A DNA stretch of 64,000 nucleotides from Macrostomum lignano (GCA_002269645.1 NIVC01000127.1:605626-669625), one strand, 5' to 3'. Shown: positions 7,201-64,000, numbered from the stretch's first letter. Notes: generated from the letters alone by a model not told the origin. Made by a program: numbers and translations.

Positions 7201-10200
7201 ATCGGGCTTTCCCGACCGAAGTGAGTGAGTGACAGAATGGCTGGCATCGCTAGGTATATAATTCATGCAAGTTATTCAAGTTAGCTACAGTTTCAAACAA
7301 GTTACCTGCTGGCATGACCGCGTTGATTTTAGCAGTAAAAATCGATCAAATTATCCCCCAATTTTCAGCCAATTTTCTAATACTGCGACGTCAAATTCTA
7401 AAATTAAGTTTTATAGTCGCTAGACTAGATTAATCGGCTAAATTAATTTGGTCTGGCTTGGCATCGCAGCATTCTAAACTGATTGAAGAAAGAGGCTTGC
7501 AGTGTACTGTCAGTGTCCCGGCTGTTATGAATCTGAAATTCACGCGGGCGGCGCCCTCAGCGGGTGGTGAAGCCGCGGAGCAGCCTCTCGCGGAAGCTGC
7601 CCAGCCGCCGGTAGGCTCTCTGGCAGCAGCCGTGCGGCCAGGGCAGCCGAAACTCGCACGGCAGCCGGCCCGGCACGCCGGCCTCGAAGAATTCGAATGC
7701 GCGATACCACCAGACCTGGGCGAGGTGGCTGCTCCGCCGTTCCGCAGCGGGGCACCTGGCCAAGGCGTGGTACACGAGGAACAGGCGGCTGGCCAGCCAG
7801 TAGCCGATGATCAGGTCCACCGTGTAGTGGGCGTGCGAGGACAGCAGCAGCATGAAGCTGATCAGACAGGTGATGAGGCTCGCCCAGCGAAGCGGACTGG
7901 CTGACGCAGGAGTATACTCCCTGATGGTCAGGTAGGACAGGGTGAGGCTGGCCGTGTGCCCCGAAAAGATGGAGTCGCCGCAGATGTTGTGCGTGTTGCT
8001 AACCGAGAAGCCGGCGCCCATGGCTATGCGGCTAACTCGGCCGTAGATCTCGGCGAAGTTCAGGCTGGAGTTGGAGCGCGGCCCGCAGTGCCGTCGGGCG
8101 TTCGGGTCGGGCATGGCGGTCACGGCGATGGTCACGGAGCGATAGAGGAACACAATGGCCAGTATGAAGCCGGTCCTGCGCAGCAGCACCCAACGGTGTC
8201 TGTGGGCCAAGCACAGGGCCAGCGCGGTGCTCATGTTCAATAGTAGCAGGGCCTCGCAGGCCATCAGGGCCCAGTCGCTGCGCGGCACAAGTCTGAGGCT
8301 GACGTCCGGCAGCGGCGGGTACTCGGGCACGTAGTCGTGCACGTACGCCAGGCTGATGGCGGTCAGCAGCATGCCGCCGCCCATGCATGCCAGGGCTAGC
8401 AGGGTTTTCCAGCATGCAGTCGGCACTGCAACGCTTCCTGCAACACTGCTGCCGCTGCCGCCGCCAGCGCTGCCGCCGACGCCGCTTCGTTCGTTGATTT
8501 CAATTTCAGCGTCACCAACGGCTGCCGTCTCCGGGATGCTGCAGTCGCCACCCTGTTGCGGCATCAGCTGATGCTGCTGGTGACTGTGCGGCGGACAATC
8601 CGGGTCAGCGAACTCCAGGCGGCGTCGCGGCATGTCCGCGCTGATCCGGTGATCCACTGAGGAATCCATGGTGTCGAGAAATTGATTACCCGTCTGTTGA
8701 TTCTGAGTTTCCGAGGTAGCGAAGAAAAACAGCCAACTCTCTTCAGTGGTCAGAATTTTCAAACGAAATTGAGAGGTTTTGCGAGTTGGAGCAACTTTAG
8801 CTAAAGATCCAAGTGAGAGAGTGGGTTTCAGCCATAGACAATTGATTGGTTCAACTATATCGATGTCGATCTTGTTGTTTACTAAAATATGTTTGATTCA
8901 TTGGACTTCACGAACTTCTGCATGCTGAATTTAACCTTCAAAATGCAACTTTGTTTTACTTGGATCATCGAGCCTAAAGCTAAAGTGAATACGCATTCTT
9001 CATACGCTGATTTTCAGGCCAGGCTATTTGGTGGTACCGGCGTCTCTGGTCTGGTACACGCCGCCAGAGATTCTCACTCAGCTGGCGGACAAAACGTCTT
9101 CTATTCCTGATTCGGCATTCACTACAGCGTCCGATGTGTTTGCATTTAGGTAGGCGGGTGAGGCTTTTGGATGGGCCAGGTGCGGGAGTGAGGTGGCTGC
9201 AAGAGTTCAAAGGGGAGAGAGAGGCGAGAGGCGGGGAGTGAGGTGGCTGCAAGAGTTTAAAGGGGGGAGGCGGGGAGTGAGGTGGCTGCAAAACTTGGAA
9301 AGTGACCTTAAAGGAAGGTATCTCAGGTTTCTCTTTAACTTTAATATGTATATGTATATAGCCAGCTATCGACTTGCTATTTGATTCGGGCCTGGCTATC
9401 TAACAAGTAGATAGGGGCTGTTATCCATGGAGACGCAAATGCAAGCCACTACCTCTCTTCTCGCCCCAGCGTGATCATGTACGAGGTGTGCGCCGGCCGC
9501 TATCCGTACGCCAAATGCGACAGGCGCCAGTACATGGAGAATGTCTGCCAAGGCAGGCGCGACACAGTGCAGGATATCCGGGTGTCGGACATCATTAAGG
9601 TGAGGCTGCTCAGTGTGCTTATAGTTAAAAACGACTAGTCGTTCTTAGTAATAGGTTAGTTGTTTGTAGTGACATTAAATACTTCGACCCTGAATCCACC
9701 AAAAAAAACTGCAAAACTCGCGCAGAACCTCATCACGGAATGCTGGAGCCATGACCCTCTGTACAGGCCGGAGTTCAGCCAAATCAATGCAGCGCTGCAT
9801 AATCGGGTAAGTGCGTGTGTTCTGGAAATTTCTGAAGTTTATTTTTACAAACCAAAAAATAGTCTATGGTAATGGGTGGGGGCCGTAGCCCAGTGGTCTA
9901 GCGGGGCGCTTTTTTGTGCCAGCGGCCCAGGCTCGATTCCAAGTGCAGTCACATTAATTTGGGGCTAAATTGGAATCTCGTCTTGGCTCTGCTCGTGCAA
10001 TTAACGCCCTTGAGGGCCAACCTCCCAGGCACAGTGAAGTGTACAAGACTAACGATAAATGGAGCTAGGGTCGCTGTACATTCCCGTGTGTGTGCCTGTG
10101 CGTTTGACTGCGTATGTATCCGCGCACTTGTGTGCCTGCTCAGGGGAGTCGGCGGAATGGGCAGTAATGCCTCTCGCCGGTTGTGTGACAATGTCGCTTA

Positions 10201-12940: not shown

Positions 12941-15900
12941 ATGCAGCACAGTTTGCACAGCTTCAATGCTCCCCAGCCGCCAGCATTTCTCGACCCGCTG
13001 TACTCGCTGGAGGACTGCTATTACTACTCTGTACCCAGGTTCCTGGACGCCCTGCATCCGACCAACCGCTGGCTTATTGGCCGCATCAAATGCGACGACT
13101 CTGACGCCATCCGCCGGAAGCTGGAGGTGTCGCCCGACTTTCTGCGCGGTAAATACTTCCAGGTGTTGGACAATCCGGCGCTCTATTTTCAAGATAAGAA
13201 GGCCGGCTCGCCGATGTACCACTGCAAGTGCGTTCTGTACCTGACAGCTCTCGGCGTGGCTCTCTACATGAAGGCTGTGAGTTCATGACGAACCATTGAG
13301 CGCTAAATTTGACAAGACATCCTCTGCTTTGCCTTCTCTTGCCTCGGTCCCAAATCACTAATCTAGCTAATAATGATTCGAATCCCAGATCTTTAATCCA
13401 AGCAATGAGGATTCTACCCCAGATCCCCAATCCAGGTAATAAGGATTTTAATCCCAGATCCCTAAATATAGGTAATTAGGATTCTAATCACAGATCCCTA
13501 ATCCAGATAGTAAGGATTCTAATCCTCGATCCCTTATCTAGGTAATCAATTTAATCCCAAATCCCTAGTCCAGGTGAGGGTTCTAATCCCAGATTCATAA
13601 TCCAGGTAGTAAGGATTCTAATCCTCGATCCCTTATCTAGGTAATCAATTTAATCCCAAATCCCTAGTCCAGGTGAGGGTTCTAATTCCAGATCCGTGAT
13701 CCTGGTAAGGATTCTAAAATCTCTAATTCAGGTAAGGATTCTAATTAAAAATCCCCAATCTACGTAATAAGGATTCTAATCCTAGATAGCTAATCCTGGT
13801 AGGGTTCTAATTCACTGTGTACTTTGCACCTGCGCCATCTGGGAGTTAACCCTCATGGCTTTAATCTCTTTTTACTACAATTCATCTGCAAGCCTATAAA
13901 ATACTATATAGCTAATGCATTTACACCTGAAGCGAGACGTCACAGAGACGCTGCTGATCCAGGAGGACCCGTACAAAGACCGCGTCACGGCGCCCACCGA
14001 AATCCAGTTCGCTTCGCACATTCAGAACGCCAACGAAGGCGACTTCCACGCCTTCCCGCTGTTCCTGGTGGCACTGCGGCGGGAGTTCTTTGCCGCTATG
14101 CTGCCGCTGCAGGCGGCCGGCTGGCAGCCGAACACCGAGTTGGCGCTACCGTTGCGGCGGCGCTACGAGCGTCGGGCTTTCTACTTCCGCGACTGGCTGG
14201 ACATTGCGCTGCACATGCTGGCTAGCAAGTCTTTCTACCCCGTCCACCTGTTGATTGAAAGCATCATCGGGGCGCCAAGCTACCGCAGCTCGCAGCTGCC
14301 GCTCCGCCTGTTCAAGCCGGGCCCGAAAGACCCCGCGCCGACGCCGACCGGCCTGGTGGACGCCGAGAGCCTCCCACCGGGGCTGCGGATGACCGGCGCG
14401 CCCAACCTGCTGGAGGTGGCCGAGCAGTACGATCGCTACCTGCAGCTCAAGCAGACTCTGCACGCCGTGCAACAGTTGAAACGGCAGGCGGAATGCGACG
14501 GCCTGAACCCGGAGCTGCTGATGCAGGCGGCGCAGGACCACCTGCCCGAGTCGCTGGACACTCAGCCGGCGCAGAACAGCAACCGGAACAACAACGCCAA
14601 GAGTCAGGCGGCGCAGCCGGTTAGAAAATCGAAATTGACTCGCGATCCGGACAGAATCTACTGCTCGGAGCCGCTGCGGATTCTGCTGTACTCGCTTGAG
14701 CGGGACCCGCAGCGCAAGAGCCTGCCGCAGTGCATCCAGGCATTCAATGTCTATTTGAGGAGAAAGTTCTTCTTCGACGCTGAACAGCTGGCTAGCGGCC
14801 ATCCCAGGTGAGTGAAGATTGGCCAAACTGATTCATTACAATTAAATATAACAACAGAAATCCGTGACTGTGAGTTCATAATTAACTGGGCAGGTGCAGT
14901 CAATTTTTTAGTATTCAGCGGAGTTTAGAAATTTGTTTAGCTGTATTATGATACACCTAATTTGAGACAGTTTTAGATAAGATACGAGTTGAAGAAAGAT
15001 TCACTCTGGTTATTAAATATTAAACCAATTAGATTACAGGTGCGGTCATGTAATTAAAGATTTAAGCAATTAGATAACCAGTGCGGTCAGGTAATTAAAA
15101 ATGTAAGCAATTAGATAGCAGGTGCCGTCAGGTAAATAAATATTGAAGCAATTAGATAATAGGTGCGGTCAGGTAATTCAAGATTGAAGAAATTATATTA
15201 CAGGTGCAGTCAGGTAATTAAATATTGAAACAATTAGATAGCAGGTGCCGTCCAAGGTAATCAAAGATTGAAACAATCAGATTACAGGTCCGGTCAGGTG
15301 CTTCACCATGTATGAGTAGTTAGACTAACGTGTGCATCCAGGTGGTTAAAGATTCTATAGTAATTACATGACAGTTGTCAGTCACTTGTTTTCACATTTA
15401 GGTAGCTACTTAGATCAGTAGTTGGATCGAGGTATGCTTCCCCATGCGATTGCAGAGCGCGCGACCTGCGCAACACGGCGACCTGCCTGCTGAACATGGC
15501 CAGGCGTGAGCAGGACATCATCGAAAACATCCTAGCCAGAGTGCGGTCTGGCCAGTGCCGGTTTGCCCACGTCAAGGAGCACAAGGTGCTGGACAGCAGG
15601 CGGTTGCAGCACGTCGCCACCATCGACAGGCTGGTGGACTACCTGGCGCACGTCCTGCTGCAGGGCAAGCAGCTGCTGACCTTCCTGCGGGTCAGCCAGC
15701 GCCGCCTGCCCTTCCCGCCCAGCAGCGTGGACTTCCAGCCGGCGCCGCGCACCAGCCTGATCTTGTCGGGCGTCCGGTACGGCCTCGTGCGCGCCTTCAA
15801 CGCTACGCGGACAGCCTGGCGCTACCTGACGGTGGACATGATGCGCAAGGCGGCCAAGGACCCGTCTCTGGTGCTGCACTGCCGGTTCGGCCAGCGGCCC

Positions 15901-15972
15901 AGCCGCGATGAGGTGCTGGCCTACGACGCCGAGATGAAGAAGCTGAAAAAGCAGAAGTCGAGCAAAAGTTAG
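12941..15972 (+). CDS. Hypothetical protein, ~582 aa; exons 12941-13276, 13912-14807, 15456-15972
   Basis: Three GC-rich open frames joined by GT-AG introns (GCT|gtgagt..ag|CTA; AG|gtgagt..cag|A). The total of 1749 nt is divisible by 3. No domain recognised; the start codon is tentative. Confidence 0.8.
13380..13815. repeat. Degenerate ~35-bp intronic tandem repeat (AAGGATTCTAATCCCAGATCCCTAATCCAGGT)
   Basis: Recurring GGATTCTAATCC / CCAGGT motifs. Confidence 0.8.
15025..15300. repeat. Degenerate ~42-bp intronic tandem repeat (CAATTAGATTACAGGTGCGGTCAGGTAATTAAAGATTGAAG)
   Basis: Recurring motif, ~6 copies. Confidence 0.8.
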
Positions 15973-17261
15973 CTAATAGTTGCGCCACAGTGAGCTTTTT
16001 GTGGTTTGTCTGCGATTTCAAATAGGGGTGTGTCTTCTTCTTTCAGCGTTTGTTTCTTTTGTACGGCAATTGTACGATTAGGTTGCGAAAGAGCGATGTG
16101 CCCTGTGTGATAAATTTAGAGCACTTCTAGCAGGTTTCGATTGGGTAACCAATACTGAACTGCAGATTAGTATGACTTAGCTAATTACACTACTTTGGAT
16201 AATCACTGGCTGTAAGTAATAACAATAATAGTAATTATTATTAAGTACTTATAATATAATCATTTTTATTTTATTAGATTCTTAATTTCCTTACATTACA
16301 ATTATAACAAAAATTTTAAAACTGCTTCAAAATTGGTATCATAAATTAAGTTTTATACAGTAATATAAGAATAATAAACTAATCAAAAGCCCAATAAAAT
16401 GTCCGCAGCTATAATCCTAACGTAATCGTTATGCTTTTTGATTTAAAAATATATAATCTTATTGAAATTTAAGCATCCAGGTGACGTTTTTAAATGCCAT
16501 CTTTGAAAGTATTAGCTAGTATTATATAAAACCCAGAATAGCAAGAAACATGTGCTTTAAATTTTCCGGGTTTTGGCGCCAATTCGAAAATAGATTGTTT
16601 AAGAATTAATTTATGGGTAGAATACGCGTCGCTCTTTCGACCCTTCCCGTAGAGTTTGCCTACAAGTTTTGTTATTTAAATAGGATTTGGTGTTGCTGCA
16701 ATTATCATGGCAGCGTGCGCGAGAAAGACTCTCTGCATTTCTGTTTCTAAGAGACGCGACGAGCTCTGTTAAGCGCTTGTCCCAGGGCCCTGCAGCTGAT
16801 TTATACATAAGCTGCAGTTTTCACATAGCTAATAGCTCTCAGTTAGGAGCACTTTATTGCCTGTTAGCCCAGTCTTGTATATTTTCTAAGCCAAAAATAA
16901 AAGTTTAATTGAAGAAAAACGCGATTTGATTTTTTGTTTCTACTCGAGAGAATGGTAATTATTATTATAGCGAGCAGCCACTGGTAGATAATCAGAGAGC
17001 GGTTTTCTTTCAAATGTTCCACGGCGAGTTATGAAGATTTCAAGGAAAAAAATAAAGAATTTTTACAGATGGCTGGCGTAAAAAACTGGTTGTGAATGTA
17101 GAAAATTAGATTTGGCAAATAAATAAATAGAATTTAAGTGGGGGTGCATAAACTCTGGAGTTACCGCTTTCATCTTTAATAAACAATATAACTTATGTTG
17201 AGCCGTGGCTCCAGTAGGGGGCCAAGTGCATACGAGAGGAGTCAGCCAAATTTAACTCGGT

Positions 17262-17450
17262 GTGGCCAGGAATCAGCCAATCAGGATTGAGGGAGGCCGG
17301 CAATCAGCCAATCAGGATTGAGGGGGGAGGCCAGGAATCAGCCAATCAGGATTGAGGAAGTCCCGGAATCAGCCAATCAGGATTGAGGAAGTCCCGGAAT
17401 CAGCCAATCAGGATTTTTCTGAAGTCCCGGAATCAGCCAATCAGGATTAG
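17262..17450. repeat. ~31-bp repeat containing AGCCAATCAGG (CCAAT-box consensus), ~6 copies
   Basis: GGAATCAGCCAATCAGGATT repeated. Confidence 0.85.
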
Positions 17451-17583
17451 TTGAGGCAGTGATTCCACAAACCACTGTGCTTATCATCGATGGGATTTGT
17501 ACGAGCAGCAAGTTTTGGTTAGTGAGGCATTGATAAGGCCCAAGACTATATGCATTGTTGGGCCGCATTCCTGGCACAGGCAG

Positions 17584-22064
<4,481 letters not shown>

Positions 22065-35850: not shown

Positions 35851-37717
35851 TCCACCCAGTGACTCCACAGCCAACCTGAATATGCAAAGCATATGCAATG
35901 ATTAGCATGGCAGCTCACTCTGAGGCCCCACTCAGATCAGCCTGAGCAGCAATCGGCAATCTGAGGCGTGACTCCGCATTCGCGGGCGGGCAGTGCGAGA
36001 CGCCCAGCCTCACTGCAAATGCGCCTCTCGGTCGCTTCACAATCATCGCTTGTATTGAACGCACGCAGCGGAGCAATCTCGGAAGTGGGGCTACACGGAT
36101 AACCTTTGTCTCGCTCGAATTTATTTGAATTCGTTTCCGCCAGGCTGGAACAATCGCTGTCGCGTAGCTGAGGCCGGAATAGGAGAACTCATTCAAAGTC
36201 GGATAAAATAAACATAAAAACTTGCCCTCCCCGAACTCAACGAGTGCGAGAGCGGCAGGAAGCTGCATCTGCTCCGGCGGATTCTGCCAACAATGCCGCG
36301 CGGCAGACGACAATGAGATGATTCCCCGTCTTGGTTGAACATTTCTGTAGCTCTGCTTTCTGTTAGCTTTTGTGTTTGTCCTGCCAGTCTCCGCGGCGGC
36401 CTCATCAAGGGTGTTCCGAGGGAAGAATGAGGAAGAAATCAAACATATGGGATTTTTGACAGAGGGGGGGCAGTATCAGTCTTGTCTGTCCCAATCTCCT
36501 CTCCTCACAATCCGGTCGGTGTCCTTAGAAAGTTTGGAAAGAAGAAGTTTTGTGGCCGGAAGTGGGGTGCATTGAGAAAATGATAAAACTGGCTGAGAAT
36601 TAGCGGGCCAGAGGGGGTCCTTCTGGTCAGGCGCATTCACCGGCCCCGGATGCGGCGTGGCCCTGAGTGCGGGGTGGGGACGGCGGGCACAGGAGAGACT
36701 GGTTGGGCTGTGTGGCTTTTGCAGAAACTTCATCAACAGCGAGGAGGACATCCGAGCTCCGCCATGCATGACCCGCTCTCGGCGCGCCCCGACCCAATTT
36801 TGCTATAACTCCCAGCTGAAGAAAACCTAGATCGGCTATGAGAAAGGTTAAGCTGAACAGATAGAGAATGGCCCGGCAGTAATGAGCTGTTATCTCGGGT
36901 TCGCTCGCAGCCCCTTCCTTCCCAGATCCCACAGCACCAACAGCCTCGGCAGCTGCGATCAGCCGCGCGGAAACATTATCTGCACCGATATGAGAGTAAA
37001 GGAGCCCCTCCTCCTCATCCCTCTTTTTTATAGAATCCCGCAAGCCAGTCAAACTGATTGAATTCGCTTAATTCCCCATTCGGCACTCGGCGAGTCCCGG
37101 CCGCACAGACTTCAGCCTATAGCTAGGCGGCAAGACTCGAGCTCCAGAATTTTAACTTGATCAATTTCTCGAATATGAAAGAAATGCGGGTCCAGAAGAG
37201 AATCTCGCGGCTGAACCAACCGACTTTTTTCGATTGCAATCTATTGATTTTTTTATTATACCAAAGCCGCAACTAATTTTGTGTATAAGTCAGCCCTTCA
37301 GATAAGAGGGCAGAGCCACGACCCATGATTCCCTGAGCGGGCACATTCATTTGGGGCTTGCATGCGTGAAAGTTGGCCAGGAGGTTATTGATGGCCTACC
37401 CCCCCCCCCCCCGGCATAGACAGTGTACACGTTTAACAATGTGACCGCAGGGCCGCTGTGTGCGATCGCGTGTGTATGAGTGCGTGCCTTCGTACAGCGT
37501 ATTCAGGAGTCAGCGAAATGGGCAGAATTGGCTTAACCTTGGTTTTAGGACGTGACGCCGAAGGCGTTGTGTCAGTATGCCCTCAGGGCTCCTCTAATAC
37601 TATATTATACTAAGCCAGATTAAAAATGATACTCTGACTGCCCAACTTACTGAAAATCCCGCAGGCGCTCTTACATCTCTACGACGCCAAAAAGGAAAGC
37701 TTTAAATCGCTCCGATA

Positions 37718-40700
37718 ATGAGTCATCAACGCCTGATCCAAGCGCTGGTATTCGCAGCTCTGGTCGCGCTGCTAGTCTGCCAGACCGAGGCTGATCCGGC
37801 CAAGAAGTGAGCAGGGAATTGGGGCAGAGGGCGGCTGCGGGGTGAGTGATTGGCATGGGGAAGGGAGGGGGTGGCTGGGGTGAGTGTTTGGCATGGGGAA
37901 GGGAGGGGTGGCTGGGGTGAGTGTTTGGCATGGGGAAGGGAGGGGGTGGCTGGGGTGAGTGTTTGGCATGGGGAAGGGAGGGGTGGCTGGGGTGAGTGTT
38001 TGGCATGGGGAAGGGAGGGGTGGCTGGGGTGAGTATTTGGCATGGGGAAGGGAGGGGTGGCTGGGGTGAGTGTTTGGCATGGGGAAGGGAGGGGTGGCTG
38101 GGGTGAGTGTTTGGCATTGGGAAGGGAGGGGTCGCTGGGGTGAGTGTTTGGCATGGGGAAGGGAGGGGTGGCTGGGTGAGTGTTTGGCACGGGGAAGGGA
38201 GGGGTGGCTGGGGTGAGTGTTTGGCATGGGGAAGGGAGGGGTGGCTGGGTGAGTGTTTGGCATGGGGAAGGGAGGGGTGGCTGGCCAGGCTGGGGTGAGT
38301 GTTTGGCATGGGGAAGGGAGGGGTGGCTGGGGTGAGTGTTTGGCATGGGGAAGGGAGGGGGTGGCTGGGTGAGTGTTTGGCATGGGGAAGGGAGGGGTGG
38401 CTGGGGTGAGTGTTTGGCATGGGGAAGGGAGGGGTGGCTGGGTGAGTGTTTGGCATGGGGAAGGGAGGGGTGGCTGGCCAGGCTGGGGTGAGTGTTTGGC
38501 ATGGGGAAGGGAGGGGTGGCTGGGGTGAGTGTTTGGCATGGGGAAGGGAGGGGGTGGCTGGGGTGAGTGTTTGGCAAAGGAAGGGAGGGGGTGATTTGCA
38601 TTCGTGTTGATTCTCAGAAATTATAGATTATAACTACTCGTATGTGCTTTCAATAAGTTCACAATGTTCGTTCGCGAGTGAATCATTCTAAATAAAGGCT
38701 TTCAGTGACCAAAAAAGTTTTTAGTGCTTTCGCCGGTTCAGAAATTTCTCTTTATCACTGGCTGTTTGCGGAGCATCCGGGCTTTCAAGTCATAGAGTCG
38801 GATTCCCCAGCTGAAGTGGAATAGCTGGCTGGGCGCACGCAAGGCCCCGGTAAAAGTTCACGCTGGCATCAGGTCCTGAGCTTCTTGGAGAAAAATTCCT
38901 TAAAGTTTTCAAAAAAATCCCTGCTATTTAATCAAACCAGTTTTGCTCCATTGTTACTAATTCCTATTTCTTATGCATTTGTTGTATATTTTTTTCGATT
39001 TGATTGCTAGCAAGTTAAGCATAGTTGGCAGCGGTTAGCAGCCCTGACTAGATAAAGCTGAGAGCTCAAGCTCATCCCCTGCTGGCAGCACTGCACAAGA
39101 AGCACAACCATCGGATCTGCTGGCTTTGCTAGTATACTCTGCAATATTGCATGTATTTATCAATAATTCAATTCAAGCATATTGCACATCCGCCCCCATT
39201 TTCAGAAGCGCCTCGCAACACGCCGCGCAGAGGGCCAAGTAAGCGGAGCAGTTCTGTTGCAAGAAACCCAATTAGCAAAAATTTAGGCTTTAAGATTTTC
39301 AAATGTTAAAAAATTGAGCATAGCGAATTTGATATTGTTGGATTGGAAAGCATTTTAGCTAAGATAGGGGGCGGGAAGGCAGATTCATTTCAACGGCTTG
39401 ATTGAGAATTTGATAGTCCTGAAACAGCTTGGAATTGCCTCCCCCAAAGCAAGAAGGAAATGGATGTGAAAACTGTTTACAGTCCGCTGTAAGGTGTAAA
39501 AATGTATATAAAATCCCTATATTAAAAAACATTCCACAGGCGATTCTCGGCTCCACGGGCGTTCGACTGGAAAAAGTGAGCGCTTTCAGTGCCTCGAAGT
39601 TCGTTTATTGAGAACTCAAAAAAGGAGGAACTGAGCTTTGAAATCGGGCGGATGTTGGGGGACTGGGGAAAGACAGGGTGAAAACAGCAACTCATCCGCC
39701 CGGGAGCTTAGTTGAAGAGGGGCGTGACGCCAGCCACACAATGCAACTCCTGCCCCATTGCTTTTGTAGGAAGCGCTTCTCCGCTCCCCAGGCCTTTGAC
39801 TGGCGGTAAGGCAACGGTGACTTCAGCCTGTTCCAGTTGCTCAGTTTCAATTGAGTCCCGTGCTCAACTGCTCAGTCGCTAACTGGCGCGACCAATTATC
39901 GATTTTGTTTTGTCTTAAAGATTAGCAGTGTAAAAGTGCAAGTTGATAGATTAATAAAGTGAATTACTATTCTAGCCTACACGGATAAAGGATAGAATGG
40001 ATTGCTAATCTAGCCTACACGGATAAAGGATAGAATGGATTGCTAATCTAGCCTACATGGATAAAGGATAAAATGGATTGCTAATCTAGCCTACACAGAT
40101 AAAGGATAAAATGGATTGCTAATCTAGCCTACACAGATAAAGGATAAAATGGATTGCTAATCTAGCCTACACAGATAAAGGAGTAGAATGGATTGCTAAT
40201 CTAGCCTACATGGATAAAGGAGTAGAATGGATTGCTAATCTAGCCTACATGGATAAAGGAGTAGAATGGATTGCTAATCTAGCCTACACGGATAAAGGAG
40301 TAGAATGGATTGCTAATCTAGCCAACACGGATAAAGTATAGAATGGATTGCTAATCTAAACTAGACGGATAAAGGAGTAGAATGGATTGCTAATCTAGCC
40401 TACACAGATAAAGGAGTAGAATGGATTGCTAATCTAGCCTACACAGATAAAGGATAGAATGGATTGCTAATCTAGCCTACACAGATAAAGGATAGAATGG
40501 ATTGCTAATCTAGCCTACACAGATAAAGGATAGAATGGATTGCTAATCTAGCCTACACAGATAAAGGATAGAATGGATTGCTAATCTAGCCTACACGGAT
40601 AAAGGAGTAGAATGGATTGCTAATCTAGCCTACACGGATAAAGGAGTAGAATGGATTGCTAATCTAGCCTACACGGATAAAGGAGTAAAATGGATTGCTA

Positions 40701-43700
40701 ATCTAGCCTACACGGATAAAGGAGTAGAATGGATTGCTAATCTAGCCTACACAGATAAAGGATAGAATGGATTGCTAATCTAGCCTACACGGATAAAGAA
40801 TTGAATGGATTGCTAATCTAGCCTACATGGATAAAGGAATAGAATGGATTGCTAATCTAGCCTACACGGATAAAGGATAGAATGGATTGCTAATCGAGCT
40901 TACATGGATAAAGGAGTAGAATGGATTGCTAATCTAGCCTACACAGATAAAGGAGTAGAATGGATTGCTAATCTAGCCTACACGGATAAAGGATAGAATG
41001 GATTGCTAATCGAGCTTACATGGATAAAGGAGTAGAATGGATTGCTAATCTAGCCTACACGGATAAAGGAGTAGAATGGATTGCTAATCTAGCCTACACG
41101 GATAAAGAATTGAATGGATTGCTAATCTAGCCTACATGGATAAAGGAATAGAATGGATTGCTAATCTAGCCTACATGGATAAAGGAGTAGAATGGATTGC
41201 TAATCTAGCCTACACGGATAAAGGATAGAATGGATTGCTAATCTAGCCTACATGGATAAAGGAGTAGAATGGATTGCTAATCTAGCCTACACGGATAAAG
41301 GATAGAATGGATTGCTAATCGAGCTTACATGGATAAAGGATAGACTGGATTGCTAATCTAGCCTACACAGATAAAGGATAGACTGGATTGCTAATCTAGC
41401 CTACACGGATAAAGGATAGAATGGATTGCTAATCTAGCCTACATGGATAAAGGATAGAATGGATTGCTAATCTAGCCTACACGGATAAAGAATTGAATGG
41501 ATTGCTAATATAGCCTATATGGATAAAGGAGTAGAATGGATTGCTAATCTAGCCTACATGGATAAAGGATAGAATGGATTGCTAATCTAGCCTACATGGA
41601 TAAAGGATAGAATGGATTGCTAATCTAGCCTACACGGATAAAGAATTGAATGGATTGCTAATATAGCCTATATGGATAAAGGAGTAGAATGGATTGCTAA
41701 TCTAGCCTACATGGATAAAGGAGTAGAATGAATTGCTAATCTAGCCTACATGGATAAAGGAGTAGAATGAATTGCTAATCTACCCTACATGGATAAAGGA
41801 GTAGAATGAATAGCTAATCTACCCTACATGGATAAAGGAGTAGAATGGATTGCTAATCTAGCCTACATGGATAAAGGAGTAGAATGAATAGCTAATCTAC
41901 CCTACATGGATAAAGGAGTAGAATGGATTGCTAATCTAGCCTACAAAGGCCGTGAGTGGGGTTTTGCCGAAAGGAATTTAGAATAGACAGTAGTTCAAAA
42001 GCAGACCTAAAGAAGAATTCAGCCTCCCAGCACCTCACACTGGCACTGCCTCTCTGCACCCTGCAGCAAGCGGTTCTCCGCTCCCCAGGCGTTCGACTGG
42101 AAGTTAGTCCCTTCACACTGCTCTGGGGCTTCGCCCTGATGCTTGGCAACTAAACAGCAATGCCAATTTAACTTTCTTCTCTTTTTCTCTTTTTGTCATC
42201 TAGGAAGCGATTCTCGGCCCCTCAGGCGTTCGACTGGAGGTGAGTAACACGCTTTCCAGATGCGGTGAAAATCTGCTTGATTGCTTGCAGAACTCAATGC
42301 TGCCTTTGTTATTGCCTCGGTTTTGTCGCATTTTCAGGAAGCGGTTCTCCGCTCCACAGGCATTCGACTGGAGGTGAGTTGGCTCGCTAATTAATGAATA
42401 GGTGCAAATATAATTATAGAATCAGTAGTAAGCCATGCCTTGAATAAAACACTCTGATATACTTTTTTTTAATATTTTAGAAAGCGATTCTCCGCTCCGC
42501 AGGCTTTTGACTGGAGGTGAGTTTGGCCAGTTCATGGACTACTGAACTGCTGCCGCTTGTTGAACTCTTTGGCTAGAATAGAAATAGCACCCGGGATAGT
42601 ACCAGGGACAGCACCAGGGACAACACCGGGGGCAGCACCAGGGACAATACCGGGGACAGCAACCGGAATAGTACCAGGGACAGCACCAGGGACAACACCG
42701 GGGGCAGCACCAGGGACAACACCAGGGACAGCACCAGGGACAATACCGAGGACAGCAGAGGGAGCAACACGGGGGGCAACACCGGGGACAACATCAGGGA
42801 CAACACCGGGGACAACACCAGGGACAACACCGGGGACAACACCGGGAATAACACCGGGGACAGCACCGGGGATAACACCGGGGACAACACTAGGGACAAA
42901 ACCAGTGACAACACCGGGGACAACACCAGGACAACACCGGGGACAACACCGGGACAACACCAGGAGAACACCAGGGACAACACCGGGGATAACACCGGGG
43001 AAAGCATGGGAGCAACAACGGGGACAGCATGGGGAAAACACCGGGGACAGCATGGGGATTACACTGGGGACAGCACCAGGGACAACACCAGGGACAGCAC
43101 CAGGGACAGCATCGAGGCTAGAAGTAGGAATAGCACCGGGGACAGCAGTGGAAGATATTTCTGCAGCAATGCAGAAAGAAAAAAGCAGATAGGTCATAAC
43201 TTCTTGAGAGTTCATGACCCCAGGGTCCATCACTTAATAAGCGTCACAGCGGCCATTACGAGTAATCTGCATCCATCATCTCATATCAATAAATTTCCCC
43301 ACTTAATTTCAGGAAGCGGTTCTCCGCTCCTCAAGCATTCGACTGGAAGTGAGTCCCAGCTTATAACTGCAATTGTGATGCGCATTTTTAATAAATTATG
43401 CATTGCAATTAAGCAATTATAATTCCCTATACAAATTCTAATTATAGGAAGCGGTTCTCTGCTCCCCAGGCCTACGATTGGAAGTGAGTAGTTTAAAAAA
43501 TATTTTTATCTTACTTTTATGTTGCTAATTACCAGAAACAAGACAGAATAATGGGTAAAAGGCGAGAGTAATTATCCGTATCTGTTACTAGTTAAATGCT
43601 TCGCCGCCTGATTAGTCTTTCTAATTTGAAATTTTTAGAAAGCGCTTCAGTGCCCCGATGGCGTACGACTGGAAGAAGTGAGTTTGATAATTTGTAAGAC

Positions 43701-44792
43701 AGATTCTGCAACACAGGGGCCAAAAAATATGGGGTGAATTCATTCTCTGCGATTTTTTTCACAATATGTGAATTCTAAAGCTTGGTAAATTCTGATACAT
43801 TACAGTAACTGGTTTTGAAGTTATGAGGGAAACAGCAAGGGGCCATGAAGTCATAAAGTAAAAGCATGAGGTCATGAGATACGAGCAGGAGGTCATGAGG
43901 TAGGAGTATGAGGTCATGAGGTTGGAGTATGACTTCATGATGTAGGAGTATGAAGTCATGAGGTAGGAGTATGACTTCATGATGTAGGAGTATGACTTCA
44001 TGATGTAGGAGTATGACTTCATGATGTAGGAGTATGAGGTCATGAGGTAGGAGTATGACTTCATGATGTAGGAGTATGACTTCATGATGTAGGAGTATGA
44101 CTTCATGATGTAGGAGTATGAGGTCATGAGGTCATGAGGTAGAATTATGATTTCATTATGTAGGAGTATGAGGTCATGAGCTAAGAGCATGAGGTCATAA
44201 AGCTAGGAACATGAGGTCAGAATGGGAGACGTCATGCTGATGTGTATTACACTCATCTATAAGCCAGAGCGCGACTCATCAATTGCGTCTTTTTTCAATT
44301 CTGTGGCAACGAGTGCACCATATTTGGCTAATGCGCGCACTGCATTAGAAAGTTAAGCGCTGCAAATGCGGAGTCCCAGTCAGCTCAAGGAAGACTTTTT
44401 ATCGTTTTCTTTTTCATTCAGATCGCTGAATGAATTTTAGTCACGCCCCAGTCACAGAGCGGCCCTGCTGTCGGGATTAATTCAATTGCTTTCGGCTTCA
44501 TCGAGTTTATCTGGCTTCATTTAGCCAGATCGAGTTTATTTGGTCTATTTTAGAATATTAAAGACTGAATAGACAGATAATTTTAGTCTGCAATTAATCT
44601 TGCGTTGAGAATTAACTTCTATGATTTGCTGCCGGCACGGCAAGGTTAAGCAAATTCGGCAGCGGTTAGCAACAAGCTGCTGTACAGGCAACGCGTCCGG
44701 GTACCCCGGGTTCGATTCCTATCCGAAGCATCAAATATCCCACTAAATTCCCGCCCCTCTCCAGGCGCAGGGCTGACGCTGATGAAGAGTGA
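37718..44792 (+). CDS. Neuropeptide-type prohormone, 158 aa, with nine FSAPxA(F/Y)DW copies; exons 37718-37806, 39206-39238, 39540-39575, 39770-39805, 42067-42102, 42204-42239, 42338-42373, 42481-42516, 43313-43348, 43448-43483, 43639-43677, 44765-44792
   Basis: Signal peptide MSHQRLIQALVFAALVALLVCQTEA. Every micro-exon is flanked by a pyrimidine tract plus AG and by GT(G/A/T)AG, and all are phase 2. Spliced product: ...DPAKKSASQHAAQRA-KR-FSAPRAFDW-KKKR-(FSAPQAFDW-[K/R]KR)x6-FSAPQAYDW-KKR-FSAPMAYDW-KKRR-ADADEE*. The first and last small exons are the least certain. Confidence 0.88.
37840..38595. repeat. 37-38 bp G-rich minisatellite (GGGGTGAGTGTTTGGCATGGGGAAGGGAGGGGTGGCT), ~20 copies, in the intron after the signal-peptide exon
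   Basis: Direct periodicity. Confidence 0.95.
39970..41945. repeat. 38-39 bp minisatellite (GATAGAATGGATTGCTAATCTAGCCTACACGGATAAAG), ~50 copies, intronic
   Basis: Units at 39971, 40009 and so on; lies between micro-exons 39770-39805 and 42067-42102. Confidence 0.96.
42560..43150. repeat. Degenerate 12-bp repeat (ACC(A/G)GGGACA(A/G)C), intronic
   Basis: Direct observation within intron 42517-43312; the source of the spurious PGTT/PGVV ORFs. Confidence 0.9.
43850..44215. repeat. 21-bp repeat (GTAGGAGTATGACTTCATGAT)
   Basis: Direct periodicity. Confidence 0.9.
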
Positions 44793-45204
44793 GCAGCCAG
44801 GAGCTGAAAGCCGAGGACAAACGGATGGCCTGGATGACGCCAGCAACATTAACATTGGACCGGACCATCAGACGCATGTCAGAGATGATAAAAAATATTT
44901 TAAGAATCAGCCCACTTATATTAATCTCACTTTTGTTCCAAGCGCTTTGAATGTCCTTCGCGAACTAAGTGTAAACCCCCAGCAGTAACCACAGTTACAC
45001 CTGCCATCAAGTGTCCGCAACAATTCCACAGAGAAATAAAGCTTAACAACTCATTGACAAGCAGCGGAAAGCCGTCACTGCCGCAAAAATACGGAGTCTT
45101 ATTAAATATAAAACAATATCTATATAATTATTGTTCAATGTTGACTTTTCTGCCAAAGCAGTACTAAAGGTTTGAGTGAGGAGTCTGAAGAGTCATCTCG
45201 GGGA

Positions 45205-47847: not shown

Positions 47848-49216
47848 TCAGCGCGCAGTCGTGCACTCGCGCGCCCAGCCGGCGCACAGATCGGCCATTT
47901 CAACTGAATGCTCCAGCACGAAGGCGTGGGCAACGTCGCCTTCGTCTAGTCTGGCGTCGACCTCCGGGCAGCTTCGACGCATGTCAGCGAAGTATTCGGT
48001 GGGACACCAGTGATCGTCAGTGCCGTAGTACAGCAGGATCCGCTGGCTGTGCTGCCTGATGGTGGCCAAGTCCGGCTGGCGGACGTCCTGCATCTCCGTG
48101 TGCGCCATGTACAGCACGTTGCCAAGGACGCTAGGCGATAGCAACAGGCGCTCAGTGGCCGCCACGGCGCCCGGGTTGGCGTTAGAATGGCCAACTGCGC
48201 TGAGACAGCGCGCGGCGAAGCCCCGGCGCCAGGCCAGAGGAATCAGCAGAGACAGCAGGGCGACCAGCGCCATGGCCAGCCAGCGGAGCGGCGCCAGCGA
48301 CAGCAGCGGAGCGACGATGCGGCCCTGCGGCGATTCGCGCATCCGCTCGATGGTGGGGAACAGCAGCAGGCAGCGGGCCACCCTGTCGGTGCCGCGGGCT
48401 TGGCGACGAAGCAGCTCCAGGATCATCTGGCACCCGATTGAGTGCCCGATCAGTACCATGTTGGCCTGCAATGCCGTGCATCAGACACTGGGGCTCCTGA
48501 AGTATGGAGATCTGGGATACTGGGGCTCCTGAAGTATGGGGATCTGGGACACTGGGGCTCCTGAAGTATGGGGATCTGGGACACTGGGGCTCCTGAAGTA
48601 TGGGGAGCTGGGAGACTGGGGCTCCTGAAGTATGGGGATCTGGGAGACTGGGGCTCCTGAAGTATGGGGATCTGGGAGACTGGGGCTCCTGAAGTATGGG
48701 GATCTGGGAGACCAGGGCTCCTGAAGTATGGAGATCTGGGAGACCAGGGCTCCTGAAGTATGGGGATCTGGGATACTGAGCTTCCTGTAACATGGGGATT
48801 TGGGAGTCTGTGGAGATTTTCAAAGCCAGTCATTTGGGGTTGAGAAAGTCCACTGAGAAAACCGAGTGATTACATACAAAATAACTTGGATAGCAGATCA
48901 AAGTGAGGCTAAAACGTCTTACATCTTCAGGCAGAGCAGTTTCCAGGAATTTTACTTTGTGTTCAACTTGCTCAGCAAGAGAAAACTTCTTGCTAGAATT
49001 GAAGGAGTTTCCATGGCCACGATGGCTCAGAGCCCAGACATGGACTTGGCCATCTAGTTTTGTCCAGAGAGAGTGCATGAATTCTTCATAGTAACCCACT
49101 ATTCCTGGATTTCCTGGAATCACAATGGCATACCAGTTGCTATCTAGAGCATCCAACTTATATAAAGAGGCCTCTGACTCAAGATGCCTCATTTTAGGTG
49201 AAACTTCAGGTGGCAT
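47848..49216 (-). CDS. LDAH: Lipid droplet-associated hydrolase (alpha/beta hydrolase), ~303 aa; exons 49216-48923, 48465-47848
   Basis: IPGNPG..YY.EF motif, SHRGH, FSLAEQVEHKV.F, nucleophile GHSIG and LLFPTIERMRESPQG; phase-0 GT-AG intron. Confidence 0.92.
48485..48800. repeat. 32-bp intronic minisatellite (GGGGCTCCTGAAGTATGGGGATCTGGGAGACT), ~10 copies
   Basis: Direct periodicity in the LDAH intron. Confidence 0.94.
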
Positions 49217-55645: not shown

Positions 55646-56109
55646 CATTTTTAATGAAAGTACTTTTTGTAAGCGTTGCAAATGAATTGAAAGATTTTCA
55701 AACTTCAGAGATGCAACGTCGCCCTTCTTCTTGAGCAGTTTAAAACATTTTTAACCGTTCAAACAGAATTAAGTGAATTTTGTTAAAATATTTCGAAGTA
55801 CTGCTTGCTCCTCCTTAACTTTGTGTTTATATTTTTTGCTCGAATTCCGAAATGTTTATTTATTAATAGTACATTCTTCCCATATTGGTAGTTTTGTTTT
55901 TACTTTAATAATTTTTAAATACTTCGTTATTTCGTCAAGCTTAGTTAATTTATTCACAAGAGTAGTCGATGCTAAAGAGTAGTTAGAAGCGAGTTTTGCT
56001 AGTAAAATGGTTTTCCAAAAGTCTATTTACAGGACATATTATTAGGCGCTTTAATGAAGTTCCATGCCAAAAAAACTTGCATCTCGACCGCTCCGCAGCC
56101 CCTGGCAAG

Positions 56110-57390
56110 ATGGCCACCACCCGGCCCAAGCCCATCACTGGCACCTTCTACCCGGACGCGTACACCTTCGGCTGGGGCGACATCCTCGGGCCCAGCGCCA
56201 CCCTGGAGGACCTCATGGCTCAGCTGGACGCTGGCGCTGGCGGAGGAGGAGGCGGCCGCGGGCGGGACGCCCGCCGCGAAGGCAGCCGGACATCTACGGA
56301 GTCGCTGACCTCCATTCTGTATCACGACAGCTTCGATGAGGACGAGTTGTCTACAGACTCCGAAGAACCGGCGGCAGTGGCGGCTGCTGCTGCGGCAAGT
56401 GACGGCGAAGGCGACAGACCGGCAGCGGCGACGGCGATGGCAAGGATGTCCGGACGGCCGCGGCTGAAGCCGGCGCTGCCCGACGAGGCTGTCCGGCCGC
56501 AGGAGGTGGCGCAGCGGCTCAACGGGGGAAGCACTGACGAAATCGCCACCGCCTCCACCAGACGGAAGGTGGCGCGCCGGAACTTGTCGCCTCCAGCCTC
56601 CAACCGGTCCGTCACTACGACGGCATCGGCGGCATCGGCGGCCTCGTCGCGAAAGCAGCCGCCTCGACAGCGGCGTCGAGTCGCGTCGGCTTCGACGGCG
56701 GACTCCGAGGATCGGCGCAGCTCCGCCTCGGGCGCGGCTGCGTCATCGACTGTCTCAGCCGCCGCCTCCGCCTCGGCTGCGGCTTCCGTCAATGCAGGCG
56801 GCACTCGCGAACGCACCTGGGAGGCCTGGTTCCTGGCAAAGGAGCGCCGGCTTCGAGAGCAGCGCCGTCGAGAGGCAGAGCAGCAGGAGAAGGCCAAGGC
56901 GGAGAAGGCGTCCAAGAAGGCCGCCGTTGATGCGGCCATCAAGCGCTGGCTGGCCAAGAAGCGGCAGCAGCAGCAGCAGCAGCACGAGGAGGAACAGCGG
57001 AAAAAGGCGGAAGAGGAGGCGAAGGCGGAAGAGAAGGAGAAGGAGAAGGAGGCGATCAAGGCCAAGGCCAAGGTGGAGTTCGCCAAGTGGCGCAGCGCCT
57101 ACGAAGAGAAGCGCCGAGCCGAGCTGCAGAAGGCCAAGCAGGAGGCGGAGGCGGCGGAGGCGCACAAGCTGGAGGTGAAGCGGAAGTCGGAGGCGGCATT
57201 CGCCAAGTGGGTGGAGGCGCACAAAAATGTGCGGCCGCACGCGCCCTACAGCTACGGGTACACGGACGGCCGGCTCATGAGCTACTACGACAAGAACAGC
57301 AACCCGCCGCCGAGCTTTGTCGTTGCCGAGCCCTGGCTGCCGCCGACAGAGACTGTCAAGCGAGAGCGATCGCCCGCTTCTAAGAACTAA
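56110..57390 (+). CDS. CCDC34: Coiled-coil domain-containing protein 34-like, single exon, 426 aa
   Basis: WEAWFLAKERR, repeated xxWxx helices in a K/E-rich coil, and the C-terminal YGYTDGRLMSYY...PPPSF...PW match CCDC34/DUF4207. ATG in good context at 56110. Confidence 0.85.
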   Translation: MATTRPKPITGTFYPDAYTFGWGDILGPSATLEDLMAQLDAGAGGGGGGRGRDARREGSRTSTESLTSILYHDSFDEDELSTDSEEPAAVAAAAAASDGEGDRPAAATAMARMSGRPRLKPALPDEAVRPQEVAQRLNGGSTDEIATASTRRKVARRNLSPPASNRSVTTTASAASAASSRKQPPRQRRRVASASTADSEDRRSSASGAAASSTVSAAASASAAASVNAGGTRERTWEAWFLAKERRLREQRRREAEQQEKAKAEKASKKAAVDAAIKRWLAKKRQQQQQQHEEEQRKKAEEEAKAEEKEKEKEAIKAKAKVEFAKWRSAYEEKRRAELQKAKQEAEAAEAHKLEVKRKSEAAFAKWVEAHKNVRPHAPYSYGYTDGRLMSYYDKNSNPPPSFVVAEPWLPPTETVKRERSPASKN

Positions 57391-63209: not shown

Positions 63210-64000
63210 TCATCGTCTCCGCAGGTCCAGCCTTATGATCCGCAGGAAGGCCTTCTTGAACTGCGCATTGGCTAGCGCGTAGCAGAACGGATTGATGGGG
63301 CTGTTGAGGTAGCACAGCCAGTAGCCCAGGTTGAACAGGTGCTTATTGAGGCACTGAGCCTGGCAGATGCTGCGGATCAGGATGAAGATGTGATAGGGCG
63401 TCCAGCAGACCACGAAGGCGCCAAGGATCAGCGTGATGGTCTTCAGCGCCTTCCGGGCCCGATTCTCCGTGCGCGACTGCTTCTTCTTCTGCCGGTCCTG
63501 CCGTTTCGTCCGCACCCGACTGCGCAGCCGCCTCGTAGCGTCCCGGAACGACTGGGCGAGCGTCGGCAGGTGCAGCTGCTTCCGCCGCTCCTCGGCGCCA
63601 CACTGGATCACTTCGATCTCGTCGTCGCCGACTGTCTGCGTCGACTGCTGCGCCGTTCGTCGCACCGGCTGCGGCAGCGGCAGCTCCACCACTGAGGTGA
63701 CCACGCGGTCCCGTTCGCCGGAGTTCAAGTCAACGCGGGTCTGCACGGCGGCCGCTTCGGCCGCGGCGGCCAGCTCGTCCTCATAAGATGGCCGCCGCTT
63801 CCAAATCGGAGAGCCGGGCCTGGCCGAGCGGTCATTGACGAGGATCTGGCTGTGCTTGGGCAGCAGTTCGATGAGCAGCCGCATGGAGTCGATGGATGGA
63901 TTCGACCGGATGCTCTCCTCGTCGATATAACGGAGGCCTTCAAACTCGTCCGACGGAGCGCACAAGGAGAACTGCAGAGTCTTCAGCTGCTGCTGCTGCT
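63210..64000 (-). CDS. Muscarinic acetylcholine receptor (invertebrate B-type/GAR-like), 3' part only (ICL3, TM6, TM7, C-terminus)
   Basis: ENRARKALKTITLILGAFVVCWTPYHI...YWLCYLNSPINPFCYALANAQFKKAFLRI; the frame is open to the window edge. Confidence 0.9.
   Translation of the reverse strand, partial: QQQQLKTLQFSLCAPSDEFEGLRYIDEESIRSNPSIDSMRLLIELLPKHSQILVNDRSARPGSPIWKRRPSYEDELAAAAEAAAVQTRVDLNSGERDRVVTSVVELPLPQPVRRTAQQSTQTVGDDEIEVIQCGAEERRKQLHLPTLAQSFRDATRRLRSRVRTKRQDRQKKKQSRTENRARKALKTITLILGAFVVCWTPYHIFILIRSICQAQCLNKHLFNLGYWLCYLNSPINPFCYALANAQFKKAFLRIIRLDLRRR

Follow-up and report, generated by a model that had tools for sequence, protein, structure and literature searches.

A micro-exon gene of the flatworm Macrostomum lignano predicted to encode a multi-copy, non-amidated peptide precursor

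The DNA analyzed here, a whole stretch of 64,000 nucleotides (nt) referred to as the window, derives from contig NIVC01000127.1 of Macrostomum lignano (GCA_002269645.1), and a reading of its splice sites identified a micro-exon peptide gene of 12 exons on the + strand between positions 37718 and 44792 (Table 1). The gene is transcribed, and this 12-exon chain has transcript support. It probably encodes a small preproprotein destined for secretion, of the kind that contains multiple copies of a peptide hormone or neuropeptide; the peptides would be non-amidated and specific to this lineage. The gene is annotated in public databases but uncharacterized.

A six-frame scan of the 64 kb for the motif F-S-A-P-x-A-[FY]-D-W returned nine matches, all of them on the + strand between 39544 and 43646, spread across all three reading frames and with no match elsewhere in the window. 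An AG precedes the Phe codon of each copy by 4 or 7 nt, and a GT follows its Trp codon after 2 or 5 nt. When the 12 exons are spliced, they give an in-frame coding sequence (CDS) of 477 nt that ends in TGA and specifies a product of 158 amino acids (aa). Every junction of the chain is of the form AG/../GT (a slash marks a splice or cleavage point), with YAG acceptors at 11/11 sites and GTRAG donors at 10/11, the exception being exon 5 with GTTAGT. The ten internal exons are 33, 36 or 39 nt long, all in phase 2-2. Each peptide exon opens with the last base of a basic codon, continues with the K-R pair and the nine codons of the peptide, and closes with the first two bases of the basic codon that follows.

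The 158-aa product (MSHQRLIQALVFAALVALLVCQTEADPAKKSASQHAAQRAKRFSAPRAFDWKKKRFSAPQAFDW...KKRFSAPMAYDWKKRRADADEE) comprises, in order, a predicted signal peptide, the spacer DPAKK-SASQHAAQRA, nine KR-flanked 9-mers and the acidic tail KKRR-ADADEE. By rule-based inspection the N-terminus resembles a signal peptide, having a basic n-region (R5), a 16-residue hydrophobic core (LVFAALVALLVC; mean Kyte-Doolittle value 3.21) and a TEA/D site that obeys the -3/-1 rule. Six of the 9-mers are FSAPQAFDW, the others being single copies of FSAPRAFDW, FSAPQAYDW and FSAPMAYDW; KR stands before each, and K/R-K-R, KKKR or KKRR after. No basic site is preceded by Gly (0 cases), so the product carries no amidation signal. 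The predicted [M+H]+ of FSAPQAFDW is 1068.4785; values of 1096.5210, 1084.4734 and 1087.4553 were calculated for the variants, and 1043.4469 and 1112.5047 for the peptides of the paralogues described below. The intact protein would be about 15 kDa.

The gene had been proposed in an original prediction made from the sequence of the window, and its coordinates for all 12 exons, yielding the in-frame 477 nt, match ours to the base. The 158-aa product, the exon phases and the canonical splice sites all held on re-derivation, and its peptide counts (six FSAPQAFDW plus three variants) and its claim that Gly is missing before the basic sites were both correct. The prediction had further described the gene as hidden and invisible to the list of open reading frames (ORFs). 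It is true that no ORF of useful length covers the exons, but "hidden" is overstated because the gene is already called as a CDS in GenBank and is present as fragments in UniProt.

Table 1. Positions of the exons of the micro-exon peptide gene, its intron minisatellites and neighboring features in the 64-kb window. L003 and L005 are paralogous loci of the same assembly; P0002 is UniProt A0A1I8IJ07.
Feature	Position	Strand	Support or remark
Exon 1: start codon and predicted signal peptide (MSHQRLIQALVFAALVALLVCQTEA/DPAKK), phase 2 end (AA/gtgagc)	37718..37806	+	same N-terminus in paralogue model P0002
Exon 2: 33-nt linker, (K)SASQHAAQRA(K), phase 2-2	39206..39238	+	acceptor ttttcag/, donor /gtaagc
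Exon 3: 36 nt, (K)R-FSAPRAFDW-K(K)	39540..39575	+	motif and splice sites
Exon 4: 36 nt, KR-FSAPQAFDW-(R)	39770..39805	+	motif and splice sites
Exon 5: 36 nt, KR-FSAPQAFDW-(K); weak donor GTTAGT	42067..42102	+	exon sequence identical in L003 and L005
Exon 6: 36 nt, KR-FSAPQAFDW-(R)	42204..42239	+	splice sites; copy comparison
Exon 7: 36 nt, KR-FSAPQAFDW-(R); FSAPHAFDW in the L003 copy	42338..42373	+	splice sites; copy comparison
Exon 8: 36 nt, KR-FSAPQAFDW-(R)	42481..42516	+	splice sites; copy comparison
Exon 9: 36 nt, KR-FSAPQAFDW-(K)	43313..43348	+	splice sites; copy comparison
Exon 10: 36 nt, KR-FSAPQAYDW-(K)	43448..43483	+	splice sites; copy comparison
Exon 11: 39 nt, KR-FSAPMAYDW-K(K)	43639..43677	+	splice sites; copy comparison
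Terminal exon, coding part: (K)RRADADEE, stop TGA at 44790-44792	44765..44792	+	GenBank CDS end; identical in L003 and L005
Probable 3' untranslated region, AATAAA at about 45036	44793..45060	+	about 98% conserved between gene copies (252-254 matches vs 3 mismatches over 260 nt)
Intron 1 minisatellite: 37-nt unit, about 20 copies	37839..38590	.	GGTGAGT donor-like motif in each unit
Intron 4 minisatellite: 39-nt unit, about 51 copies	39963..41945	.	bulk of the 2261-nt intron
Intron 8 minisatellite: 12/24/36-nt periodicity	42586..43111	.	intron of 796, 622 and 836 nt in the gene copies
Intron 11 minisatellite: 21/42-nt units	43863..44219	.	intron of 1087, 1376 and 1446 nt in the gene copies
PAP2_C (sphingomyelin-synthase-like) ORF	7557-8762	-	
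LDAH	47848-48471	-	3 kb downstream of the peptide gene
CCDC34	55996-57390	+	
C-terminal exon of a rhodopsin-type G-protein-coupled receptor (GPCR)	63210-63965	-	7tm_1, E = 4e-20; NPxxY-type motif, long preceding loop

The GenBank annotation of the M. lignano assembly was produced only from RNA-seq via STAR and StringTie/TACO, a mapped de novo transcriptome and TransDecoder ORFs (Wudarski et al. 2017, PMC5730564). Because this annotation was built from transcripts alone, the CDSs that it calls count as transcript evidence. Our locus record for the gene (L004, contig NIVC01000127.1) is 100.000% identical to window positions 37848-59234 over 21,387 nt, and the paralogous loci L003 and L005, which lie on contigs NIVC01000461.1 and NIVC01000128.1, were fetched from the same assembly alongside it, with the downstream LDAH gene as anchor. 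The CDS called on the + strand of the window stops exactly at 44792 (L004 gene range 14443..21387, equal to window 37848..44792; L004-rc 6945). The annotated product measures 146 aa at the window copy and 158 aa at each of the two paralogous loci, the latter being the exact length of the 12-exon chain and the former that of the chain minus one 36-nt exon. Inclusion of the 33-nt linker exon gives 477 or 441 nt (158 or 146 aa), and its omission 444 nt (147 aa); the linker therefore belongs to the transcript, since the annotated lengths fit only with it. The predicted joining of the exons in transcripts is thus borne out by a transcript-only CDS ending at 44792 and by 158-aa products at two paralogous loci.

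The donor of exon 5 (window 42103-42108) reads GTTAGT in the window copy, as against GTAAGT in L003-rc and L005-rc, and this is the sole copy-specific splice-site defect in the window among the exons comparable across copies. Because this donor is found in the window copy only, we infer that exon 5 is the exon absent from the 146-aa product. The change may be a copy-specific exon-skipping mutation. Alternatively, the 146 aa could stem from collapse of the repeats by the transcript assembler, as in two of the paralogues described below.

UniProt holds two older, ML2-based models of the family. A0A1I8HD77 (P0001), named "Coat protein", is a frameshifted 108-aa fragment in which five FSAPxAFDW exons are joined at the same junctions before the frame is lost; its last 43 residues are identical to what the terminal exon and 3' flank of the window gene give when translated out of frame. 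A0A1I8IJ07, named "ANK_REP_REGION domain-containing protein", is a 1378-aa chimera that strings ORFs matching window 13.9-29 kb to a partly intron-retaining paralogous copy of the peptide gene. The exact 158-aa string was absent from the protein collection searched. The locus illustrates two kinds of damage to gene models, in that ab initio models mangle such genes and transcript assemblers collapse their repeats.

Purifying selection on the peptide and its cleavage sites is strong. The nine 33-nt peptide cores are 81% identical, and the flanking intron sequence stands at random identity (0.27-0.29). Counted as variable columns among the cores, third codon positions gave 8/11 and first positions 2/11. 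Codon differences among the nine cores number 147 synonymous vs 37 non-synonymous; 8 of these 37 are spurious, because the first core took in two bases of intron. The ratio of non-synonymous to synonymous divergence (dN/dS) is 0.06, with dS at about 1.2, that is, saturated. Pairwise comparison of the introns of the gene found no similarity above shuffled controls (z <= 2.6). As the exons are alike and the introns unrelated, the peptide copies date far back, and constancy has been maintained only in the 36 nt that encode the peptide.

The same signature is seen between gene copies. Across exons 5-12, the window copy differs from L003 and from L005 at 2/283 positions in each comparison, and three of these four differences are synonymous, the remaining one being a Q to H change in L003. 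The five short introns differ at 27/557 aligned positions (Fisher p = 0.001 vs exons). Divergence between copies is thus 0.7% in exons vs 4.9% in introns, 7-fold lower in the exons.

A phmmer search with the repeat part of P0001 against 1.84 billion representative sequences retrieved four true relatives, all from M. lignano: P0001 itself, P0002, PAA48327.1 (P0003) and PAA83548.1 (P0005; cluster mates PAA73271.1 and PAA59548.1). In a first word-indexed search P0001 had been the sole relative, and a profile of the three paralogue families gave no further match and none outside M. lignano. Within this species the family has at least seven loci in at least three subfamilies. The other HMMER matches whose sequences were read proved to be unrelated repeats that lack a signal peptide, lack basic sites or have a different motif.

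Two of the paralogues are organized quite differently from the window gene. The gene of PAA48327.1, BOX15_Mlig001773g8 (L001; contig NIVC01004175.1, 10001-10402), holds eight copies of FSAPGTYDW, and that of PAA83548.1 (L002; NIVC01000415.1, 10001-10423) holds seven copies of FVQPGTYDW after a first copy FAQAGTYDW. Each of the two is one ORF without interruption (133 and 140 aa, respectively), in which eight 36-nt units, arranged head to tail, stand between a signal peptide and a short acidic tail. The annotated proteins (85 aa for PAA48327.1 and 92 aa for PAA83548.1) contain four peptide copies, the annotated 144-nt "intron" being four in-frame units; the shorter proteins would reflect either repeat collapse in transcript assembly or copy-number polymorphism. 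When the three precursors are aligned, K-R, F1, D8 and W9 are present in every repeat and P4 in each except the first; position 7 holds an aromatic residue throughout, and the signal peptides and spacers differ. PAA48327.1 and PAA83548.1/PAA73271.1/PAA59548.1 are therefore like the window gene in precursor plan, in the 36-nt (12-codon) unit, in the KR-F..P..(F/Y)DW core and in the acidic tail. In contrast, these paralogues are intron-free and their units are about 95% identical at the nucleotide level, pointing to recent expansion or concerted evolution, whereas the window gene has an intron between all units, 81% identity and saturated synonymous change.

In the window gene the intron interrupts the basic codon that directly follows Trp (...TGG AG/G AAG CGN...), and the intron-free paralogues hold AG/G at the same place (TGG AGG AAG AGG), a context that appears proto-splice-site-like. 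A retrocopy test on L001 found no poly-A remnant. Introns may have been gained in the branch of the window gene, or they may have been lost in the other branches. Since a single genome contains the same 36-nt unit in two forms, an intron-free tandem repeat (about 95%) and a micro-exon array (81%), the family offers a natural comparison of the influence of introns on concerted evolution, copy-number change and splicing-based dosage.

For the 158-aa product Pfam returned no family at threshold, giving only sub-threshold noise. Neither FDW nor YDW occurs in the text and supplements of the planarian prohormone paper (PMC2953531), the strings FDW[KR] and YDW[KR], and indeed any xDW[KR], are absent from the supplements of the xenacoelomorph paper (PMC6188537), and no paper in the searchable literature contains the peptide strings or the paralogue gene IDs. 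Among the top literature results, none links micro-exon organization to neuropeptide precursors. Achatin, MIP/Wamide and orcokinin are presumably set apart from the motif too, going by their consensus sequences. The view that the peptide matches no known family is therefore upheld for Pfam, the planarian and xenacoelomorph catalogues and the literature strings. The broader suggestion of a new peptide family with an unusual gene architecture survives in part: no named family was found, and both the peptides and the layout of one exon for one peptide appear to be undescribed, but the gene is not isolated and its paralogues are conventional single-exon genes. The family adds uncharacterized non-amidated peptides to the signaling-peptide candidates of a transgenic, regenerating flatworm model.

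Flatworm npp/spp preprohormones (Collins et al. 2010, PMC2953531) share with the window gene a signal peptide, short spacers, near-identical peptides at di-/tribasic sites and lineage-restricted sequences. Compared with the npp/spp genes of Schmidtea mediterranea and parasitic flatworms, the window gene has a new motif, no amidation signal and one exon per paracopy. The AWDF/LWDY peptides of acoelomorphs (Thiel et al. 2018, PMC6188537) are likewise non-amidated, multi-copy and evenly spaced, with an aromatic-Asp-aromatic end, and have been confirmed by mass spectrometry in acoels. Their triplet is, however, reversed (W-D-F/Y vs F/Y-D-W in the window gene) and they belong to a different phylum, so that the likeness is a lead only.

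Beetle periviscerokinin (Capa) genes contain one to four duplicated exons of the same phase with one peptide each (Veenstra 2019, PMC6585902). The window gene resembles them in having one peptide with its cleavage sites per internal exon, same-phase introns, in-frame duplication and the possibility of alternative splicing. The beetle exons are, however, of ordinary size and number one to four, whereas in the window gene nine consecutive exons of 36-39 nt form the whole peptide-bearing part.

Micro-exon genes (MEGs) of Schistosoma are reportedly the subject of work by DeMarco et al. in 2010. In schistosome MEGs the exon for the signal peptide precedes a long series of tiny symmetrical exons, which hold most of the coding region and lie between conventional terminal exons, and such genes are stated to be restricted to platyhelminths (PMC4350168, PMC10526429). 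Tandem repetition of 81-nt exons has been recorded for one schistosome gene (Davis et al. 1988, cited in PMC10526429). The window gene, from the same phylum, shares with them a 5' signal-peptide exon, a CDS lying mostly in tiny multiple-of-three exons, introns of 0.1 to several kb and a layout in which exon skipping would keep the frame. Alternative splicing of the micro-exons, by which MEGs vary their proteins, may be reflected in the 146-aa product of the window copy, if that product arose by skipping rather than by repeat collapse. Its ten internal exons of 33-39 nt, all multiples of three and in phase 2-2, account for 360 of the 477 coding nt (75.5%), and exon 1 encodes the predicted signal peptide of a secreted product. 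It does not belong to a known MEG family by homology, as the true relatives found by phmmer against the 1.84 billion representatives and by two word-indexed searches are from M. lignano only and none is annotated as a MEG. Nor does it show the accelerated, diversifying evolution of MEGs. Those genes evolve fast at the host interface and are not arrays of cleavable identical peptides, whereas in the window gene, which belongs to a free-living worm, purifying selection is strong. As the structural make-up of a MEG is found here outside the parasitic lineages, the origin of the MEG architecture becomes testable.

The sequence evidence as a whole supports the prohormone reading and all of it fits. 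In the processing that we envisage, which is modeled on the established biology of preprohormones, signal peptidase would cut after TEA, a PC2-type (subtilisin-like) prohormone convertase would cut after the KR, KKR, RKR or KKKR sites, and a carboxypeptidase would then trim the trailing Lys/Arg, releasing nine nonapeptides that are non-amidated and share the core F-x-x-P-x-x-(F/Y)-D-W. The released peptides would end in free Trp, because no Gly precedes the basic sites. From the sequence we infer cleavage, the identity of the mature peptides, secretion from neurons or endocrine cells and action through a receptor. The PC2 homologue of M. lignano is expressed in the nervous system and is essential (PMC4490696), and PC2-dependent prohormone processing has been demonstrated in planarians (PMC2953531).

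Several points weigh against the peptide-hormone or neuropeptide reading. There is no cross-species conservation to lean on, because no relative outside M. lignano was found, and the predicted peptides lack the C-terminal amide typical of most flatworm neuropeptides. The label "neuro" is drawn from the precursor layout alone. On the side of expression, the support consists of annotated product lengths and CDS ends, and the 146-aa product of the window copy implies at least one transcript without one peptide exon. The precursor layout by itself fixes no cell type, so the same convertase-processed precursor could be destined for non-neuronal export from gland, epidermis, gut or reproductive tissue (e.g. 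prostate), with a pheromone, seminal-fluid, antimicrobial or other exocrine role. Yeast alpha-factor and amphibian skin peptides are exocrine parallels. Non-amidated peptides would suit such a role, and a family seen in M. lignano only in every search, with at least seven loci, is typical of fast-evolving secreted or reproductive genes. Strong purifying selection and saturated synonymous divergence are, however, unlike typical rapidly evolving reproductive or defence peptides, and short identical tribasic-flanked 9-mers are the commonest neuropeptide signature in flatworm catalogues (PMC2953531); we consider an exocrine role unlikely.

We regard it as improbable that the product stays uncleaved and acts intact as a small, secreted protein of repetitive sequence with a high content of Lys/Arg and aromatic residues, for example as an adhesive or a coacervate-type matrix component. 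The repeat KKRFSAPQAFDW does join cationic with aromatic residues, and cleavage is itself predicted from sequence. Against this, all repeat boundaries are di-, tri- or tetrabasic and end in Arg with Phe next, conservation in three paralogue families coincides exactly with the 9 residues that lie between sites, and the protein, at just 158 aa, has spacers like those of prohormones at its N- and C-terminal ends. That the locus is an artefact of annotation or assembly, or an array of decaying pseudogene fragments with splice-like dinucleotides arising by chance, is scarcely credible. The locus is rich in minisatellites, the older models P0001 and P0002 are frameshifted or chimeric, and transcript models of the paralogues collapse repeats, all of which could invite such an error; but 22/22 splice sites stand in one register with the frame intact across 12 exons, transcript-derived CDSs are called at three loci, dN/dS is 0.06 and divergence between copies is 7-fold lower in exons than in introns. 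The peptide-hormone or neuropeptide precursor accordingly remains the reading that we favor.

The spacing of the peptide exons is 134-143 nt for exons 5-8 and 135-191 nt for exons 9-11. Most likely the array would have grown as a unit of one exon plus its intron, about 135-140 nt long, was duplicated in tandem, after which the introns would have diverged fully, four of them would have been inflated by minisatellites and selection would have kept the peptide constant. This mode of amplification is favored because the introns of the peptide exons share position and phase and because spacing is regular in exons 5-8 and 9-11. Homology between introns, as a sign of unit duplication, was not detectable, and the regular spacing alone remains. 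All introns lie in phase 2 inside the cleavage linker, and therefore gain, loss or skipping of an exon keeps both the frame and the cleavage sites. As a cassette design, such changes would alter only the number and mixture of the peptides.

Tentatively, these parts may be joined into one proposal, which as a whole is possible rather than probable. The locus would be a structural micro-exon gene in an early-branching free-living flatworm, derived from a tandem-repeat peptide gene via amplification of a 36-nt exon plus intron, and an intermediate in the origin of MEGs. Exon skipping, whether regulated or mutational (e.g. of exon 5 with the GTTAGT donor of the window copy), would tune the dose and mixture of the peptides per transcript, and these would constitute an undescribed non-amidated signaling family, F-x-x-P-x-x-(F/Y)-D-W.

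Four distinct intron minisatellites (Table 1) make up most of the 7-kb gene span. That of intron 1 starts about 30 nt past the exon 1 donor, placing about 20 decoy donor-like sites directly behind the real one. A repeat element with the core GCAAG(G)TTAAGCA..GGCAGCGGTTAGCA is present in one copy each in introns 1 and 11 (38995-39095 and 44630-44740), and an exact 14-mer of it occurs at these two sites only within the window. The intron 11 copy runs on into a tRNA B-box-like GGTTCGATTCC and ends about 25 nt before the terminal exon. The element may be a tRNA-derived short interspersed element, without a call by ARAGORN or Rfam, which found no RNA genes at the locus. Upstream of the ATG (37545-37612), a ACGTGACGCC resembling a half-site of the cyclic-AMP response element lies at about 37550 and a TATA-like CTATATTATA at about 37601, about 115 nt ahead of the ATG; CGTGACGCC, which resembles the latter, is found in intron 3 at about 39724. 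A bacterial promoter/terminator scan, which is not relevant to a flatworm locus, was empty.

A generic scan of the window for further KR-flanked multi-copy peptide genes found none. The neighboring genes and ORFs are listed in Table 1; the GPCR ORF is 18 kb away from the peptide gene and nothing indicates a functional link. A 453-aa ORF with PQ-rich repeats (18737-20098, - strand) has no Pfam match. Between 18 and 35 kb the window holds, on both strands, large short-tandem-repeat tracts of the (CAGA/GTCT)n-like type that give rise to "TDRQ" and "CLSV" pseudo-ORFs, together with P/Q-rich and other minisatellites. These tracts agree with the reported tandem-repeat content of about 15% for the M. 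lignano genome.

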